Virus record (IMG/VR): IMGVR_UViG_3300007812_000019 | Coordinates: 1-10,434 of that record | Strand: one strand, 5' to 3' | DNA: 10,434 nucleotides | Shown here: in pieces, positions 975-10,434 of the stretch | Numbering within the stretch: position 1 is the stretch's first letter | How the letters are laid out: each line of letters starts with the position of its first letter | Notes under the pieces: generated by a model | The model's input: the letters and a program-made list of their open reading frames with translations, nothing else | Database searches by the model: none | Told to the model about the DNA's origin: nothing | Position numbers and translations under genes: made by a program

Positions 975-1814
975 TTAAATTATGTGAAGACCGAACAGTA
1001 CTGCTAACATCATCATAGCCACTATACCGATCACGAAGTATAGCATTATCCTACCCATTGCTTGCACACGCTTACTCTCATTCTGCAACTTCAATAACTT
1101 CACTAAGTTTGCATTCATCTCCTTAACCGTCGTGGGTATCGTACTCAATATCTCCAACTCTTGCGATAACCTACGGCTAAGTAATAATTTAGGGTCAACA
1201 GCAATAGCGAGCTTTGTGGTAGGGGATAACGTTATAGAACCAGTAATCATTTTTTTAACCTTAGCCAACTGTGCTAATAATTCTGGTTCCGCTGTATCAT
1301 ACTCAGACACAGGTATTGACGTTTCTAACGTCTCTAACCTTATCGCATACGGCATTGTGTTGTTTTTTCTGATCGTGATCAGCAACGGTCTGTGAATTTT
1401 CCCGTATTGTATCATCCCTACCATTGATTCCGAGGTGACTGGGACAATTAGCTCTTCGCCCGTCACTGGGTCGTGGACTGTGTACAACGACGGCGATAAT
1501 TTTTCACCTATGTATAGTTGGGCAGACCTAGTTGATATGTCGACGTTCACCACTACAACGTCACTATTCTTAGAGCGACGGATTTGCCTTATCAGTCCTC
1601 CTCTTATTGGGTCTTTCATGTACGACCTTCTGAACGCTAAGTATACGACAATAAATACTATAAATAGTATACCTAGAGCGATGAAAATGTAAATAATTGG
1701 TGGGGATAATAGTGTTTGGAATAACGATAAAGCTGTAACATGTTGGGTTACATGTTGGTGTGGGGCTACCGTATTTGTTATTGTTACGTTTGAAGACGGT
1801 GGTTTCAGTGCCAT
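975..1814 (-). CDS. Membrane protein (279 aa) with N-terminal and C-terminal TM segments; probable virion or morphogenesis protein
   Basis: Hydrophobic stretches IIYIFIALGILFIVFIVVYLAF and IMLYFVIGIVAMMMLAVLFGL. TATA-like TTTAAAT ~25 nt upstream of the ATG (leaderless) and a T-run at 959-965 after the stop. Lies directly downstream of the MCP gene. Confidence 0.8.
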   Translation of the reverse strand: MALKPPSSNVTITNTVAPHQHVTQHVTALSLFQTLLSPPIIYIFIALGILFIVFIVVYLAFRRSYMKDPIRGGLIRQIRRSKNSDVVVVNVDISTRSAQLYIGEKLSPSLYTVHDPVTGEELIVPVTSESMVGMIQYGKIHRPLLITIRKNNTMPYAIRLETLETSIPVSEYDTAEPELLAQLAKVKKMITGSITLSPTTKLAIAVDPKLLLSRRLSQELEILSTIPTTVKEMNANLVKLLKLQNESKRVQAMGRIMLYFVIGIVAMMMLAVLFGLHII

Positions 1815-2396: not shown

Positions 2397-2470
2397 TTTT
2401 CGCTTCGCTGTTTCTGATATGGAAAGTGAATAGGGACAGTTTCAGCCCAACCAGTTAGACAGAAATAAGC

Positions 2471-2486
2471 GTAAAACTTATAATTT
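2471..2486 (+). promoter_or_regulatory. BRE/TATA (GTAAAACTTATAATTT), probable promoter of the hairpin-RNA plus mini-CRISPR transcript
   Basis: Purine-rich BRE followed by TTATAA. The expected TSS (~2505-2510) coincides with the start of the GC-rich hairpin, and no sizeable + strand gene follows. Confidence 0.6.
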
Positions 2487-2508
2487 AGAACATCCCAGAA
2501 CAGAAATT

Positions 2509-2581
2509 GGGTACCCCCGTAGCGGGGTATCCTATATATGGGGCGCCCCGCGGGGGTGTGGCGTAGCTTGCCTGCCCCCGT
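2509..2581 (+). ncRNA. Putative structured RNA (two GC-rich hairpins and a central palindrome) forming the 5' part of the mini-CRISPR transcript
   Basis: 51/73 GC. Hairpin 1 at 2509-2532 has a 9-bp stem and loop CGTAGC. GGGGCGCCCC lies at 2540-2549. Hairpin 2 at 2550-2581 also has CGTAGC at its apex and ends on the base before repeat 1. Confidence 0.55.
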
Positions 2582-2662
2582 GTTGAAATAAGGAAGAACT
2601 GAAAGTTTTCTATATGTCTCTTTAACGTCTCTACCTCAGTTGAAATAAGGAAGAACTGAAAT
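2582..2662 (+). CRISPR. Virus-borne mini-CRISPR array: 2 x 24-bp repeat GTTGAAATAAGGAAGAACTGAAA(G/T), one 33-bp spacer, no cas genes in the window
   Basis: Repeats at 2582-2605 and 2639-2662 are 23/24 identical. Length and the ACTGAAAG 3' end match Sulfolobales-type repeats (8-nt Cas6 handle). Spacer 2606-2638 is TTTTCTATATGTCTCTTTAACGTCTCTACCTCA. Confidence 0.85.
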
Positions 2663-2796: not shown

Positions 2797-3267
2797 TCAT
2801 ATTCGTTCCTGCAACCTACCTAAAACCTTATCTCTAATTAGTGAATAACCCCAGTATTCTGGGTATTTCTTATAGACGTAGTTTAGAATCTCGTCTTTAC
2901 TCTTCCTAACCCATTCCCTGAAAAACGTCTCAATCTCCTTTTCCTCTTCCTCAGGTTTAAATTCGCTATTTAAAACGTATTTCCTTATGTATCCTATTAT
3001 TGCTTCGCTCAGCGGATCTCTTACTTCCTCTTCCTCCTCCACGCAAACCTCTCCTAATTCGATCAATTTGTCAATATAATCCTGTAATTTCGACGAATAA
3101 GCACCGAAGAACCAAGGCTTAAAATCCAGCCCTAGTTGTACTCCTTTCTCCTTCTCAAGTAAAAAGAAGATCTTCTGCAGTTTAGTCGGAGTGACCTCTG
3201 TATTCTCCTCTTTAGCGGTATAAAGCAACAGTTTGATTAAGCGGTAAATTCTGTCCTCGGTTAACAT
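2797..3267 (-). CDS. Panacea/SocA (DUF4065, YwgA-like) antitoxin-domain protein, orphan
   Basis: Motifs TKLQKIFFLL, FKPWFFGAYS and C-terminal LNYVYKKYPEY. Start moved from 3285 to the ATG at 3267 because the TATA (TTTATA, 3300-3305) is too close to 3285. Confidence 0.75.
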   Translation of the reverse strand: MLTEDRIYRLIKLLLYTAKEENTEVTPTKLQKIFFLLEKEKGVQLGLDFKPWFFGAYSSKLQDYIDKLIELGEVCVEEEEEVRDPLSEAIIGYIRKYVLNSEFKPEEEEKEIETFFREWVRKSKDEILNYVYKKYPEYWGYSLIRDKVLGRLQERI

Positions 3268-3334
3268 AACCAACCCTAATATCATACACAGAGAATGAAT
3301 ATAAATTTGGTAGGGGTTTGAGCTTCATTGCCTA

Positions 3335-5091: not shown

Positions 5092-5415
5092 TTAACGCTG
5101 ACCTCCTTCTTTCAGGAGGTGTTTCCATATTGCGATTCTTATGAGTTCGCTCATATGAATCTGGTTCTGTTCGGCAATTCGTTTTAGCCCGTCTAACATC
5201 TCTTCATTGATTTTAACACTTGTTCTCGTCTTCTCGTCTACTGGGATGGATAGGGCTACTGCTATTATATCATCCTTTGTTATACCTTCATGGATAAGGT
5301 TATTTATAGCGTCCCTCATCACTAAAGATCTGTTCTTACTCTTAGAATCAATAATTTCAATTGCTCTATGCTCTATTCTAAACGAAACAATTCTTTTTTT
5401 CGCGGGATTCCCCAT
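5092..5415 (-). CDS. Tandem ribbon-helix-helix (CopG/Arc-like) DNA-binding protein, 107 aa
   Basis: Two RHH patterns: RIVSFRIEHRAIEIID...NRSLVMRDAI and RTSVKINEEMLDGLKRIAEQNQIHMSELIRIAI. Confidence 0.8.
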   Translation of the reverse strand: MGNPAKKRIVSFRIEHRAIEIIDSKSKNRSLVMRDAINNLIHEGITKDDIIAVALSIPVDEKTRTSVKINEEMLDGLKRIAEQNQIHMSELIRIAIWKHLLKEGGQR

Positions 5416-5624: not shown

Positions 5625-6362
5625 ATGAATTTCAAAATGCTTAAGGCGTATATGTCCACATATGATAACCCGTTACATGTCATGTTTAGGACTGCATTAA
5701 ACAGGTTCCCTTTCACAGCGAACTTAAGGAACGGGTTGGAAGTGGAAATAAAGTCTAAAAGGCACGCCTGGTTTTTTTCGACGTTACACGACCTTGACAT
5801 CATTTTTGCCAATGATATATTTATACAATTTAGGTACAAGGACAGGATACTAAAATTCTATTTCGATATAAATAATTTCGTAGCTTTCGGGGAAATTTTC
5901 AGAGACGATATATATAATGTTGATGTGAAAGGAAGGACAGTAGTTGATGTCGGTGCGGGGATAGGCGATTCGTCAATTTATTTTGCGTTGAACGGTGCAA
6001 AGAAAGTCTATGCATTTGACGTTAATGTGTCGTACTTAGAGAAGAACATAAAGGAAAACAATCTAAAAGACGTCGTTGAGCCGATTCGTTGTGAGTGTGG
6101 ACTTTCGAATAATTTAGATATTATAACTCTGAAATACAATATTCCTTATGGGTCTGTACTTAAAGTCGATTGTGAGGGGTGTGAATACGGTTTCTTTGGT
6201 GTGGCTCCGCCACGTTTGATTAGTAGATATCATGCAATTATTATAGAATATCATAACGGCGTTCAACATCTTGCGGATCTACTTAGAGCATCAGGGTTTA
6301 ACGTTGTAATTCGAGGGAACAAGAAGAAGATCGGCTTGATATATGCAAGGCGACTAAGATGA
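5625..6362 (+). CDS. FkbM-family SAM-dependent methyltransferase
   Basis: VVDVGAGIGDSSIYFA (SAM-binding motif I), KKVYAFD, LKVDCEGCEY, IIIEYH. Confidence 0.9.
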   Translation: MNFKMLKAYMSTYDNPLHVMFRTALNRFPFTANLRNGLEVEIKSKRHAWFFSTLHDLDIIFANDIFIQFRYKDRILKFYFDINNFVAFGEIFRDDIYNVDVKGRTVVDVGAGIGDSSIYFALNGAKKVYAFDVNVSYLEKNIKENNLKDVVEPIRCECGLSNNLDIITLKYNIPYGSVLKVDCEGCEYGFFGVAPPRLISRYHAIIIEYHNGVQHLADLLRASGFNVVIRGNKKKIGLIYARRLR

Positions 6363-7354
6363 AGTATGACCCGCGAATAGCCCAATTACGTTTCTTCGCG
6401 TCTTTGTCAGTTGCTTTATATCATCTGTGGACTCTTCAGATAGTCCCCCTTGCGTTTTTCCGTCCTGGTTGGCTAGGTGTTCCGTTGTTTTTCGAGTTAT
6501 CGATATTTCTCCTCATGAGCAGACTAGATGAAAACCCCTCGCTCTCCCGTTATTTCAAAAGAAGGGTGAGGAGGATATGGCCACTTTATTTCCTCGTCGT
6601 CGTCGTAGTATTCTTAGCCGACAGATATATGTTCAATCTGAGGGTGACATATTACGACTTGTTACTCCATTTTGTGTTCGTTTCCTTCGTTCTTACACCG
6701 TTTTCCTTTCATTACCTCTTCTGGTCTCTTCAGCTGGAAGAATGGATGTACTTAGCTATCCCCTTCATTCATGCAATGGATGATAAAGCAAAGTTTCAAA
6801 CAGCTGTTTTGTTGGTTTTTATATCGTTTTCCTATAGTCTCTTTATCGTCCTCCTCCCCTACAACGAGTTCCACTTACTTTACCTTATGCCACCCTTCTG
6901 GTTAGGGGCATATGGGTGGGGGATAATTGCTTACCTTTTGAAGAAGAAACAGAAAGATGAACAAACCAACAAAAAAGCCAAATATTTCATACTAATACTT
7001 TACGCTCAATATGTTTTTACTGCATTGGTATTTTCCTCTAATAATGAATTTGTATATGAGCTCTTCACAAGGTTCTTGATTTACAACCTGGCGTTACCCG
7101 CTTTCGCCCTCCTTATTCTGAACCCACCTAAAGTACTTAATCGTATAACGGTCTTCCTTGGAGAGGTAAGCTACGGGGTCTATCTGTGGACTTTACTATT
7201 TCAGGAACTTTTCGGAGTAGCTGGAATACTTTACGGCATCCTGACAGCTATCGCTACGGAGTTCCCATTAAGAAGAGGAGAAATAATAAGTAGGTTGAGT
7301 TACTCCTCAGTCCCGTCTGGGAAAAAAGTTTCACATTTTCGCAATAATGTATAG
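6359..7354 (+). CDS. Acyltransferase family 3 (OafA/YrhL-like) integral membrane O-acyltransferase
   Basis: LRFFASLSVALYH, GVPLFFELS, YFKRRVRRIWPLY, FWSLQLEEWMY, LGEVSYGVYLW. ATGA overlap with the methyltransferase indicates translational coupling. Confidence 0.92.
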   Translation: MKYDPRIAQLRFFASLSVALYHLWTLQIVPLAFFRPGWLGVPLFFELSIFLLMSRLDENPSLSRYFKRRVRRIWPLYFLVVVVVFLADRYMFNLRVTYYDLLLHFVFVSFVLTPFSFHYLFWSLQLEEWMYLAIPFIHAMDDKAKFQTAVLLVFISFSYSLFIVLLPYNEFHLLYLMPPFWLGAYGWGIIAYLLKKKQKDEQTNKKAKYFILILYAQYVFTALVFSSNNEFVYELFTRFLIYNLALPAFALLILNPPKVLNRITVFLGEVSYGVYLWTLLFQELFGVAGILYGILTAIATEFPLRRGEIISRLSYSSVPSGKKVSHFRNNV

Positions 7355-8251
7355 GTAGTCTTCTCTGAGTTGCTTATATTTCACGTAAGCTTCGTCTGGT
7401 AGTAACCTTGGTGTATACACTACATGTGAATACTTCTTTTTTAGCTCGTTCTTAAGTATAAGCCCGACGTTAACACTGTTATAATCTCTAAGCGGGTATT
7501 TAGTTTTTAGTAATTTCCCAGCAATATTCACAACGTTCTTGTACACGTGTGCCTCAGATGTAGTCATCGTCCGTGGTACTACTGTTATAGCATACGACGA
7601 TGGCATAGCTTTCATCAATACACCAGACAGTCTCGTTTCCGACGGTATAGTCAAAAGCACGTTACTGAACTTTATCGCCCATGTCTGTGCGTATTTATGT
7701 ATCTTTTCTAGTCTCAGTCTATCCATTTTACCTACCTGCTTCCCGAAACCTATTCCAGCGTCGTCTATAATTATCATCGGGATCTTATTTATTCCGTAAT
7801 TTTTCATTGCCTCAATTAGGTCGTCGAGTTGCAGAGGGTCGATAATTATGTGGGCGATGGCGACGTCCCAGTCGCCGTACAGTGCATAGGCGAGCCACAA
7901 CGCTAATGAGGATTTCCCTCCCCTAGCCTCCCCACTGATGATCGTAGTTTGACCAGTATCTATTGGTACAGGTCTAATTTTCATGAACTTGTGTTCCTTT
8001 CTGTCTATCGCTATTTGGTATATTGTATGCATCATGAGAACCGTTAAATCGGCAATACCTTCCATGTAATATTTTCTGGACAAGTCAATATACTGCTTCT
8101 CCATGTAGGGAAAATCAATGAACTTTACATTGCCCTCATACACCTGTGTGTAGTATTTATCGAACATGGGCAATAACGTATTGTAATCTACTTTCAACAG
8201 TGCCTTCTCTGGGTCTGTGTCGTTCAATTTTATATAATCATTTATTCGCAT
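7331..8251 (-). CDS. P-loop ATPase (ASCE group; possible genome packaging or extrusion ATPase)
   Basis: Walker A GEARGGKS and Walker B IIIDD. The ATG at 8251 follows an SD-like GGGTGG and overlaps the end of the upstream gene (track start 8269). Confidence 0.8.
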   Translation of the reverse strand: MRINDYIKLNDTDPEKALLKVDYNTLLPMFDKYYTQVYEGNVKFIDFPYMEKQYIDLSRKYYMEGIADLTVLMMHTIYQIAIDRKEHKFMKIRPVPIDTGQTTIISGEARGGKSSLALWLAYALYGDWDVAIAHIIIDPLQLDDLIEAMKNYGINKIPMIIIDDAGIGFGKQVGKMDRLRLEKIHKYAQTWAIKFSNVLLTIPSETRLSGVLMKAMPSSYAITVVPRTMTTSEAHVYKNVVNIAGKLLKTKYPLRDYNSVNVGLILKNELKKKYSHVVYTPRLLPDEAYVKYKQLREDYLYIIAKM

Positions 8252-8756
8252 CAACTTCCACCCTTTCAAGAATTTCTTTTTTAAGAACCTGGTAATCTTC
8301 AGGCTTCCAGAACTTCAATATACTGTATTTGTCTCTTTGGTCTCTCTCAAACACAACTGGTTTGAGTAATTTGATCTTCACAGTGCTTACTTTTTGCCCC
8401 GAAGGATATACATATTTTATAATAAGGTTCTGGTCGTCAAATTGCAGATCATAGACCTTCCTGGGGAGAAATAGTAAACTAGTAACATTGTATCTATGAT
8501 CTTCTTTCGCTAATTTTACAACTATTTTCTCTGGAAATAATAAAACGTTGTATATACCCCTCTTTTTCACGTTTATTGTTACTGAAGTCTTGGATTTCCT
8601 TTTAGCTTCTGGGTCGTTACAATCTGCTTGTAATAGCTCATACACATCATCGCTTATTTCCCTGACCTTGTAACACTCCCAAGGGAACGAAAATATAGGT
8701 AGGTCGTGGTTGCGTGTCTTTATTCTCCTTATTTTTTTCCTGTACCCTCTCCTCAT
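8238..8756 (-). CDS. Hypothetical basic protein (172 aa), coupled to the ATPase
   Basis: Arg/Lys-rich N-terminus, TATA at ~8779-8786, stop overlaps the ATPase start. Confidence 0.75.
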   Translation of the reverse strand: MRRGYRKKIRRIKTRNHDLPIFSFPWECYKVREISDDVYELLQADCNDPEAKRKSKTSVTINVKKRGIYNVLLFPEKIVVKLAKEDHRYNVTSLLFLPRKVYDLQFDDQNLIIKYVYPSGQKVSTVKIKLLKPVVFERDQRDKYSILKFWKPEDYQVLKKEILERVEVDANK

Positions 8757-9224: not shown

Positions 9225-9262
9225 ATATTTAAACACATATGTTTGATGGATTTGCTAAGTAT
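9225..9262 (-). repeat. Duplicated promoter block, copy 2
   Basis: 35/38 identical to 4478-4515. Confidence 0.85.
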
Positions 9263-9410
9263 GATAACCCATTTACAAACGGCTTAGCAACTTGTTGGGG
9301 ATATTAATGCTGTTTGTAGCATTAAAGATATGAATAAGGCTTTACGGTTGAAAAATCAAGAACCGATGCAAAGTTAAATATACTATTCTACTATATTAGT
9401 TTTGGTAACT

Positions 9411-10031
9411 ATGTTAGCTAACCTTTCTCTCCTTTTAGAAGAATATTTCCCTGTCCGCTTAGAGGAGATGTGGGATTATTTAGCCAAACAGTATGAGTAT
9501 GAGGGTATGCTAATGTTAATCCTAAATGAAGATAAAGACAGGTCAAAAATACTCTCAAAAGAAGCTGAAAAAATAAAGAAAGATTTTGGATTTATGTTTG
9601 GCAGTAACGTAACCATAGAAGAATACGTTAATATGGTAATGAACGGGTTACAAAAACTTATTGACGGGTTGAAGAAAAATGAAGATGAGTTCTACAAAGA
9701 GGTATTAAATTCTGATAACCCTAATTTCCTAATAACCACTTATTATTCGTTGTATTTACGCTTCGTAACAAAAGTATACTTAAAACTACACAAGGTTGAC
9801 GCGAAAACAAAAGATTCTAGGATTAAAGATATATTCAACATCGCTAATTTCTTAGTAGGATTTTTCGGGATGCCTATACTACTATATATAAAGAAAAAAG
9901 AAGTATTCCCTTATATATCTGAGCTAAGCGGAGCATTATTACACGCACTAGTTGCCGATAGGACGCCTATACCCTCAAATGACTCCTTAGGATATTACCT
10001 ATTTTTCAGGATCCACGCTGATAACTCATAA
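9411..10031 (+). CDS. Hypothetical alpha-helical protein (~206 aa)
   Basis: Long ORF with TATA TTAAATATA at ~9374-9382. Start is ATG 9411 or TTG 9402. Confidence 0.78.
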   Translation: MLANLSLLLEEYFPVRLEEMWDYLAKQYEYEGMLMLILNEDKDRSKILSKEAEKIKKDFGFMFGSNVTIEEYVNMVMNGLQKLIDGLKKNEDEFYKEVLNSDNPNFLITTYYSLYLRFVTKVYLKLHKVDAKTKDSRIKDIFNIANFLVGFFGMPILLYIKKKEVFPYISELSGALLHALVADRTPIPSNDSLGYYLFFRIHADNS

Positions 10032-10065
10032 CTGTTAGCAGAAGGTGCTGAAGAGCCTTAGAGCT

Positions 10066-10079
10066 AAAACATATGTTTT
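10066..10079. promoter_or_regulatory. Palindrome AAAACATATGTTTT overlapping the BRE/TATA of the last gene
   Basis: Perfect 14-bp palindrome abutting TTTTTAATA. Confidence 0.68.
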
Positions 10080-10105
10080 TAATACACGAACTAAATAATC
10101 TTCTT

Positions 10106-10434
10106 ATGGGACTAATAGGTTCACTGGCAACTGTGTTTTACAGAATCAACGAAGGTATAATATACTCAACTTTTCTCGTCGATCTACTGGTAACCCTGAT
10201 TGACTTCAATGAGTATTCAACAAATCCCGCACTTGCAAATTACATATCGTTATTGTTGTCGTTCAACCTAGTACTGTACCTGGAACATATTCTAGGGAGT
10301 ATATTTCAGAATGCTGGCATAATAGCAGGAGGAGTAATAGCAGGGCTTGCTACTATTTCTGCATTATTCACTAGGAATTACCTCCTGAACTTGTCACAAC
10401 AAGAGATGAGTACTATGCAAGTAATCTTCATTTA
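10106..10434 (+). CDS. Membrane protein, 3'-truncated by the window edge (MGLIGSLATVFYRINEGIIYSTFLVDLLV...); missing from the ORF track
   Basis: ATG at 10106, ~25 nt after the TATA. Frame is open to the window end and has several hydrophobic segments. Confidence 0.75.
   Translation, partial: MGLIGSLATVFYRINEGIIYSTFLVDLLVTLIDFNEYSTNPALANYISLLLSFNLVLYLEHILGSIFQNAGIIAGGVIAGLATISALFTRNYLLNLSQQEMSTMQVIFI

Follow-up and report, generated by a model that had tools for sequence, protein, structure and literature searches.

A probable virus-borne mini-CRISPR locus with a GC-rich, putatively structured leader in an SMV-like bicaudavirus and its relatives

We analyzed a stretch of 10,434 nucleotides (here referred to as the window), which is the IMG/VR contig 3300007812_000019. 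Between two genes it carries a promoter-like block, a GC-rich segment and two CRISPR repeats enclosing a single spacer. The repeats match those of a Stygiolobus strain nearly completely. The same arrangement was found in related viruses, including a case in which a different repeat family stands behind the same promoter. We give about even chances to the reading that this is a virus-borne mini-CRISPR without cas genes, in which the promoter would drive a structured leader RNA, the repeats would mimic those of the host and the spacer would be fixed.

Anatomy of the locus and its host match

The source virus was an SMV-like bicaudavirus, since megablast matched SMV1, SMV3 and SMV4 as well as a short piece of ATSV with 82-93% identity (82-89% for the three SMVs). 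The mini-CRISPR feature is intergenic and lies between the minus-strand genes 1886-2356 and 2797-3285. Neither has an assigned function, the former being a conserved membrane protein. According to the ORF list of the window, no ORF of at least 40 aa overlapped the feature. When the ten largest ORFs in these 10.4 kb were examined, none belonged to a Cas family, and no known anti-CRISPR family was detected among the neighbouring genes. The neighbours at 5092-5415, 5625-6362, 6359-7354 and 7331-8269 include a ribbon-helix-helix regulator, a SAM methyltransferase, an O-acetyltransferase and a DnaA-like ATPase. Short A/G-rich repeats (GGGAGAAAAAC-like and GAGAGAAGTGAA-like) of variable copy number were observed upstream of a conserved anchor in the related loci L049, L054 and L065. 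They sit between the divergent promoter and the promoter of the putative RNA gene; the equivalent position in the window is about 2410-2440. The features of the locus are listed in Table 1.

Table 1. Features of the mini-CRISPR locus in window coordinates
Feature	Position	Strand	Basis
Putative promoter: conserved 26-nt block 2457-2482, including part of the BRE/TATA-like stretch 2471-2486	2457..2486	+	read directly
Predicted transcription start, about 24-27 nt past the TATA	2506..2510	+	known archaeal promoter spacing
5' GC box GGGTACCCC with palindrome GGGTACCC	2509..2517	+	palindrome kept in relatives
Hairpin 1: 9-bp stem, loop CGUAGC; lineage-specific	2509..2532	+	folding
Speculative 17-codon GC-rich mini-ORF, stop inside repeat 1	2538..2591	+	own reading
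Second GC palindrome GGGGCGCCCC	2540..2549	+	read directly
Hairpin 2 (conserved 'S' hairpin): loop UAGCU, 13 bp with one bulge	2550..2581	+	MFE and centroid
CRISPR repeat 1, 24 nt, predicted Cas6 cut after 2597	2582..2605	+	sequence; host match
Spacer Y, 33 nt	2606..2638	+	between repeats 1 and 2
CRISPR repeat 2, terminal, ends in T, predicted Cas6 cut after 2654	2639..2662	+	sequence

A first-pass annotation of this DNA had claimed a BRE/TATA element at 2471-2486. The element is present at this position and belongs to a block that is conserved in SMV4 and ATV. The 26-nt block occurred a single time in the window, with one mismatch in SMV4 and four mismatches (22/26) in the promoter of the ATV mini-array, each being the sole site in the sequence scanned. 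This similarity was significant when local alignments were compared with 500 shuffles (p<0.002). On the basis of the Sulfolobales BRE/TATA consensus the segment is probably a promoter. In archaea the spacing of promoters puts the transcription start at a known distance after the TATA. The distance from the TATA to the GC block was 20-24 nt in the three promoter-bearing variants (window, SMV4 and L056). A shared early or anti-defence promoter regulon was rejected, since the promoter had no second copy in the window or in any other locus scanned.

The 73 nt at 70% GC that had been noted in the first reading were measured at 69.9% over 2509-2581. This was the maximum of the window, where 73-nt segments averaged 38.0% (sd 6.2), and the only large non-coding GC block within it. 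Folding of the whole block was modestly better than that of shuffled sequences (z -1.9 to -2.4). The palindrome of the 5' GC box was kept in relatives, where the changes within it were symmetric (GAGTACTC in L056 and GGGTACTCC in L064), and GC palindromes were also contained in the leaders of ATV and SMV1. The box is a candidate for an RNA 5' clamp or a DNA operator. The second palindrome aligned with the GGGTACCCC box of the relatives (MAFFT).

A double hairpin presenting CGTAGC at both apexes had been proposed, and this held in part. The motif is found at both sites (2518-2523 and 2562-2567) and hairpin 2 was robust, as it appeared in both the MFE and the centroid fold. It also closes on the base directly 5' of repeat 1, as had been claimed. 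Hairpin 1 alone reached -15.3 kcal/mol (z -2.5), but it competes with another fold in the MFE structure of the 73 nt, so that the double hairpin is one of several folds. A segment of ~32 nt gives rise to hairpin 1 and the second CGTAGC. SMV4, L065, L041 and L056 lack this segment, and neither hairpin 1 nor the pair of CGTAGC apexes is seen outside the lineage of the window. A third CGTAGC is located at 2739-2744 in an AT-rich context downstream of the array. In total the window holds six copies of this motif versus 2.1 expected, and three of them lie within 227 nt.

Of the two hairpins, hairpin 2 alone is conserved in relatives. In five variants 95% of the cells were paired, mainly through sequence conservation. 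Covariation, named in the first-pass annotation as a check of the structure, was not significant: the five variants held one compensatory pair (A-U to G-C), and this was reached in 210 of 500 shuffles. The result neither supports nor refutes an RNA structure, and the conserved thing could therefore be the DNA sequence. The stability of hairpin 2 differed between variants. It was strong in SMV4 (-23.2 kcal/mol, z -3.0), where promoter and repeat are kept, and weak in L056 (z -0.3), which is without the repeat, and in L041 (z 0), which is without the promoter. L065 (-25.7 kcal/mol, z -2.85) is a partial exception, since its repeat is decayed. This pattern provides indirect support for a constraint on the hairpin. 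However, the repeat of L065 has decayed next to a perfect hairpin and promoter, and the hairpin of L056 has no repeat beside it, so that a repeat may not be needed for the hairpin to work.

Over their shared part repeats 1 and 2 were identical (23/23), with a final T in repeat 2 versus a G in repeat 1. The terminal ...GAAAT variant was also present in SMV4, L064 and L012. Within viral arrays 1-3 positions varied between the repeats, a pattern of arrays that are old or in decay. To find a host, 185,579 genomes were scanned for a two-repeat pattern. The only organism returned was Stygiolobus sp. CP850M, whose repeat was identical to the viral one in 23 of 24 positions. The arrays of this organism are long (~110 units), a weak Cas6-like ORF is located near them, and their spacers measure 32-38 nt, a range into which the 33-nt viral spacer fits. 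Comparison of these host spacers with the viruses studied here gave only chance matches of 14-18 nt.

Decayed repeats at one end fix the polarity of the Stygiolobus array. The leader beside its repeat 1 is AT-rich save for the last 21 nt, which are moderately GC-rich. The GC block of the virus showed no similarity to this leader, the one host leader available (p 0.2-0.9). As the viral leader is unlike that of the host, spacer uptake is unlikely. In Sulfolobales the crRNA carries an 8-nt handle, with Cas6 cutting 8 nt before the end of the repeat. The 3' end of the viral repeat, ACTGAAAG, is a variant of this handle, which makes the plus strand the sense strand and puts the promoter on the correct side.

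Spacer Y recurred with one or two changes in the SMV-like locus L060 and in the ATSV-like loci L012 and L019. A spacer X was shared in diverged form between ATSV and L060, and a spacer Z was found in L012. The unit of repeat 1, spacer Y and repeat 2 was 94-95% identical between viruses whose flanks were 86-89% identical or not alignable. SMV-like and ATSV-like viruses thus share spacers that carry point mutations (window 2606-2638, L060, L012/L019 and L002). The viral spacers are fixed sequences without turnover. For the spacers Y, X and Z no target was found in isolate phages, plasmids (PLSDB), IMG/VR and the fetched loci; the IMG/VR protospacer search used an exact 21-nt core, with no mismatches allowed in metagenomes. 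A match of 11 nt at window 1326-1336 was at chance level. Furthermore, spacer Y had no PAM-plus-seed match to its own promoter or elsewhere in the window.

The same site in related viruses

Syntenic loci were fetched via a neighbouring protein from IMG/VR and JGI metagenomes and comprised ~29 distinct versions of the site. About 12 of these were empty, lacking the TATA, the GC block and the repeat. Every TATA-bearing variant had a GC-rich segment directly after the TATA, and each variant with a full repeat had a GC hairpin just upstream of it. Filled and empty sites differed by a replacement that left neither a target-site duplication nor terminal inverted repeats.

Besides the empty versions and three with a hairpin of type B, the remaining ones had GC-rich sequence behind the same promoter. 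The GC-rich segments were of different types. Type S consists of the GGGTACCCC box and the conserved hairpin behind the same promoter. Its repeats were found in several states: none in L056, one in SMV4, a decayed one in L065 and L041 (the promoter of L041 was lost as well), and two with a spacer in the window and in L006 and L059, which are nearly identical to it. In IMG/VR, the core of the S hairpin was present at the mini-CRISPR locus only. An origin from a MITE or IS end was rejected on account of this distribution and the lack of a target-site duplication.

In type A (L060 and L064) the same promoter and box are followed by a partial repeat, a GC block of 70-89 nt and then repeats. The type-A block was also present in ATSV and in the ATSV-like loci L012 and L019, with one to three repeats after the block. 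L064 carried exactly one repeat after promoter and GC block, as did SMV4. No significant sequence similarity was found between the S and A blocks, yet these dissimilar blocks follow the same promoter at equivalent positions (L060 and L064 versus SMV4 and the window). The terminal hairpin of type A showed compensatory changes in four variants. In the type-A blocks of L002 (2430-2505), L012, L060 and L064 a 5' helix competes with the terminal hairpin for a C-rich segment. In the truncated RNA of the four variants this helix was predicted at -14 to -20 kcal/mol, and a G-to-A change in the C-rich segment was matched in both partners. The type-A block may be a two-state RNA.

Three versions of the site carried a different small GC hairpin (type B), which was also found elsewhere in these genomes. 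This hairpin of ~30 nt (CCCCGTCCGTKAGGGCGGGGTAGTTYAC) was observed at the syntenic site in L049/L061/L063/L068 and at other places in L052/L067 and L012. It was present or absent between otherwise similar contigs, and its arms resemble those of the type-A terminal hairpin. From its distribution it looks like a small mobile element.

Behind its promoter, which was unique in the ATV genome, the ATV mini-array has a GC-rich leader followed by repeats of a family different from that of the window. In ATV, ATV2 and SMV1, homologous GC hairpins of 46-50 nt hold the 'spacer' position between ATV-type repeats, and this GC 'spacer' was conserved between viruses from Italy and Yellowstone. The unit of repeat, GC-hairpin spacer and repeat lies at about 440-590 of L118 (SMV1, NC_023585 about 38.5-38.65 kb), at about 400-500 of L119 (ATV2) and at 37450-37620 of L101 (ATV). 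The hairpin spacer contains a TATA-like TTTATATG. In ATV2 repeat 1 directly follows a gene stop, without an upstream promoter, and in SMV1 the annotated ORF gp35 overlaps repeat 2. Searches of IMG/VR by promoter pattern or ATV-type repeat gave no homologues other than ATV, SMV1, SMV4, L056 and the copies of the window.

The promoter that ATV has in common with the window and the GC-hairpin 'spacer' shared by ATV, ATV2 and SMV1 indicate a family-wide design, with a host-type repeat behind a promoter and a GC clamp or hairpin, in which the repeat family differs between lineages. Since the layout recurs in SMV4, in several Yellowstone contigs, in ATSV-like viruses and in ATV, ATV2 and SMV1, it represents a conserved design and not a chance juxtaposition. 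The first-pass claim of a promoter and a GC-rich structured leader joined to a mini-CRISPR array is borne out, and the repeats are of host type.

Comparison with known systems

The initial description of the locus as an unrecognised architecture and a candidate for a new system was too strong, as mini-arrays of viruses without cas genes, including that of ATV, and solitary-repeat RNA anti-CRISPRs have been published. Solitary repeat units (SRUs) were reportedly treated by Faure et al. 2019. Virus-borne mini-CRISPR arrays were described for the Sulfolobales viruses SPV1 and SPV2, together with a one-spacer array in ATV (Medvedeva et al. 2019; PMC6858448). The window locus resembles these arrays, which lack cas genes, carry one or two spacers between host-like repeats and are located in intergenic regions behind a promoter. 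It has two host-like repeats, one 33-nt spacer of host-like length and no Cas family among the ten largest ORFs. With respect to the leader, a conserved BRE/TATA-like promoter is present, with no similarity to the one host leader compared. With a promoter block identical at 22 of 26 positions, the ATV array is a true homologue of the window locus. The window locus differs from the described mini-arrays in its leader, a GC-rich predicted hairpin RNA unlike the host leader, and in its spacers, which in loci of this type are conserved between viruses and do not turn over. Whereas the spacers of such mini-arrays are expected to target closely related viruses or other mobile elements, no target was found for the spacer of the window in the databases searched. 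In the ATSV-like viruses, ATV, ATV2 and SMV1 the 'spacer' position itself is a conserved GC hairpin.

Promoter-driven solitary repeat units act as RNA anti-CRISPRs (Racr), and the bacterial ones were shown to be dead-end ligands for Cas proteins (Camara-Wilpert et al. 2023; PMC10651486). Like these, the locus is a viral repeat mimic behind its own predicted promoter and is matched to the CRISPR type of the host. SMV4 and L064 hold exactly one repeat and in this respect correspond to SRUs, which are defined by a single intergenic repeat without a second one inside 100 bp. The window, however, carries two repeats 57 nt apart and a spacer, and SRUFinder's own rules would therefore class it as a mini-array. 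A further difference is the GC-rich structured segment of 40-90 nt between promoter and repeat (73 nt in the window). Moreover, the hosts here are archaea with unstructured 24-nt repeats.

The CRISPR-repressed toxin-antitoxin RNA pairs of haloarchaea (CreTA) likewise join a small structured RNA to a unit that resembles repeat-spacer-repeat. In contrast to CreTA, the window locus is not placed beside cas genes, its spacer lacks a partial match to a neighbouring promoter, and its mini-ORF has neither a conserved start codon nor a ribosome-binding site.

In the GenBank record of ATSV a 'possible viral CRISPR locus' is annotated (NC_029316, 11703-11992). It shares the repeat family with the window and one further spacer with the SMV-like L060; spacer Y is found in the ATSV-like L012 and L019. 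It differs in that a type-A GC block lies between two of its repeats, and both the promoter context and the genome position are others. About 1.5 kb upstream of this CRISPR-like locus a repeat region is annotated (L002 1-802, ATSV 9232-10146), and ATSV is cited in the TIGR-Tas paper as having an array of this type. As far as we searched the literature, the GC-rich structured leader or pseudo-spacer in its two or three forms, two of them without significant similarity, appears to be undescribed. The same applies to a shared promoter with exchanged repeat families and to the conservation of spacers across genera.

Proposed mechanism and competing explanations

Transcription of the locus, processing by Cas6, loading and every functional role, including those of a decoy or a stabiliser, we infer from the features described above. 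The promoter would start transcription at ~2509, that is at the GC box. The transcript would comprise the GC-rich structured leader, two repeats that mimic those of a Stygiolobus- or Acidianus-like host and one fixed spacer. Judged by the 8-nt crRNA handle, host Cas6 would cut 8 nt before the end of each repeat, after 2597 and 2654. One product would be an ordinary crRNA with spacer Y for loading into host effector complexes; it would most likely be directed at a rival mobile element. The other would be a leader RNA of ~89 nt that ends in 16 nt of the repeat, directly next to hairpin 2. The hairpin of the leader would most likely stabilise this short RNA at high temperature by blocking exonucleases, and would insulate the repeat. 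The leader RNA may also be a dead-end ligand for Cas6 or for Cas7-type or other backbone Cas proteins, in the manner of an RNA anti-CRISPR. In loci of the A and ATV types the hairpin RNA would bear a genuine 5' handle and might be taken up as a blind pseudo-crRNA.

A rather unlikely alternative is that the GC block has no RNA role and acts at the DNA level, as an operator palindrome or as a barrier or terminator of convergent transcription, or that it is a passenger, namely an inserted GC element. The small palindromes (GGGTACCC, GAGTACTC and GGGGCGCCCC, as well as those of ATV and SMV1) keep their twofold symmetry better than the geometry of an RNA hairpin, and the covariation of hairpin 2 was not significant. 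By our own reading, the hairpin is followed by T-rich sequence on the minus strand of SMV4 and L056; in L056 it adjoins the end of the next gene and has no repeat beside it. For a passenger speaks the type-B hairpin, which is dispersed, looks mobile and resembles the type-A terminal hairpin in its arms. Against this stand the restriction of the S hairpin to the mini-CRISPR locus in IMG/VR and the replacement of empty by filled sites without target-site duplications or terminal inverted repeats. A function at the DNA level also agrees poorly with a block that begins at the expected start of the promoter in three variants at a spacing of 20-24 nt, with two dissimilar GC blocks occupying the same interval between promoter and repeat, and with a hairpin that erodes upon loss of the promoter or the repeat. 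That the locus is a decaying relic seems quite improbable to us. Recombination would then have brought in a fragment of a host array a single time; this fragment would have passed between co-infecting bicaudaviruses and would now be on its way to being lost, with spacer and GC block being functionless. The many empty syntenic sites, the intermediates with one, a decayed or no repeat, the mutual differences of repeats within a viral array, the missing spacer targets in the databases searched and the lack of spacer turnover would all be expected of such a relic. However, the repeat-spacer Y-repeat unit is more conserved than its flanks and common to different genera. Furthermore, the dedicated promoter is conserved in ATV from another continent, the repeat family behind it differs between virus lineages, and the GC 'spacer' of the ATV type is conserved between Italy and Yellowstone.

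The first-pass annotation had also considered a CreT-like toxin RNA. The GC block would then be a toxic or addictive small RNA with a short ORF, whose GC-rich codons are rare in the AT-rich host, and would be restrained by the crRNA-like unit. The 17-codon ORF ending inside repeat 1 fits this idea, as do its in-frame ATG in the SMV4 version and, by our own reading, the GC blocks of ATSV and L012, which open with an ATG immediately 3' of the repeat handle and are distinguished by a 3-nt indel. Yet the start is ATG in the window and SMV4, GTG in L065, ATA in L056 and GCG in L060 and L064, no ribosome-binding site was found for the mini-ORF, and substitutions fit the pairing of the stem at least as well as a coding function. 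In addition, the PAM-plus-seed match that CreTA would lead one to expect was found neither at the own promoter nor elsewhere in the window, and the locus is viral and not beside a cas operon. We therefore regard this explanation as very improbable. Equally hard to credit is that the GC block is an ordinary host sequence such as a CRISPR leader, a tRNA/att fragment or an IS end. The moderately GC-rich final 21 nt of the Stygiolobus leader could be cited in its favour, and CGUAGC is presumably reminiscent of the 5' part of tRNAs, which we count as a lead only. A match to a host leader, a tRNA/att fragment or an IS end, which the first reading had named as evidence against its proposal, was looked for with the Stygiolobus leader, ARAGORN, Rfam and IMG/VR, and none was found. 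A host leader was rejected because the GC block is unlike that of Stygiolobus (p 0.2-0.9). ARAGORN found 0 tRNA or tmRNA genes. At E values up to 10, cmscan gave nothing over the block and only chance hits outside of it; this permissive search covered the window and four related loci, and no form of the block matched an Rfam family. All IMG/VR copies were placed at the mini-CRISPR locus.

The preferred reading of a mini-CRISPR with a structured leader RNA can be extended to the bicaudavirus family as a whole, which is doubtful at present. In this extension the family would encode GC-hairpin pseudo-crRNAs or leader RNAs that are processed by Cas6 from a module of promoter, 5' GC clamp, stable hairpin and one or more host-matched, exchangeable repeats. 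The RNA would load or trap Cas6 or backbone proteins of the host in blind complexes and would thus be a structured RNA anti-CRISPR. SMV1 is reported to be tolerant to CRISPR immunity, and a family-wide RNA anti-CRISPR, if true, might bear on this tolerance. As SMV1, ATV and ATV2 are cultured according to database records, it is directly testable whether such RNAs are made and processed.

To our knowledge, RNA anti-CRISPRs have been tested only in bacteria, and both these and virus-borne mini-arrays are recent discoveries. The module described here is compact and recurs across the Bicaudaviridae (SMV-like and ATSV-like viruses, ATV, ATV2 and SMV1). It stands out by a conserved promoter followed by a GC-rich hairpin that is joined to host-matched repeats, by the change of the repeat family and by conserved spacers. 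If the locus is inert, it documents the capture of host array fragments, their sharing between viruses and their decay. Should the RNAs prove to be produced and processed, hyperthermophilic archaea would have their first described case of structured RNA decoys or of fixed viral crRNAs. Since relatives share its layout, the locus is a candidate source of a viral RNA by which the CRISPR immunity of the host is exploited or jammed.
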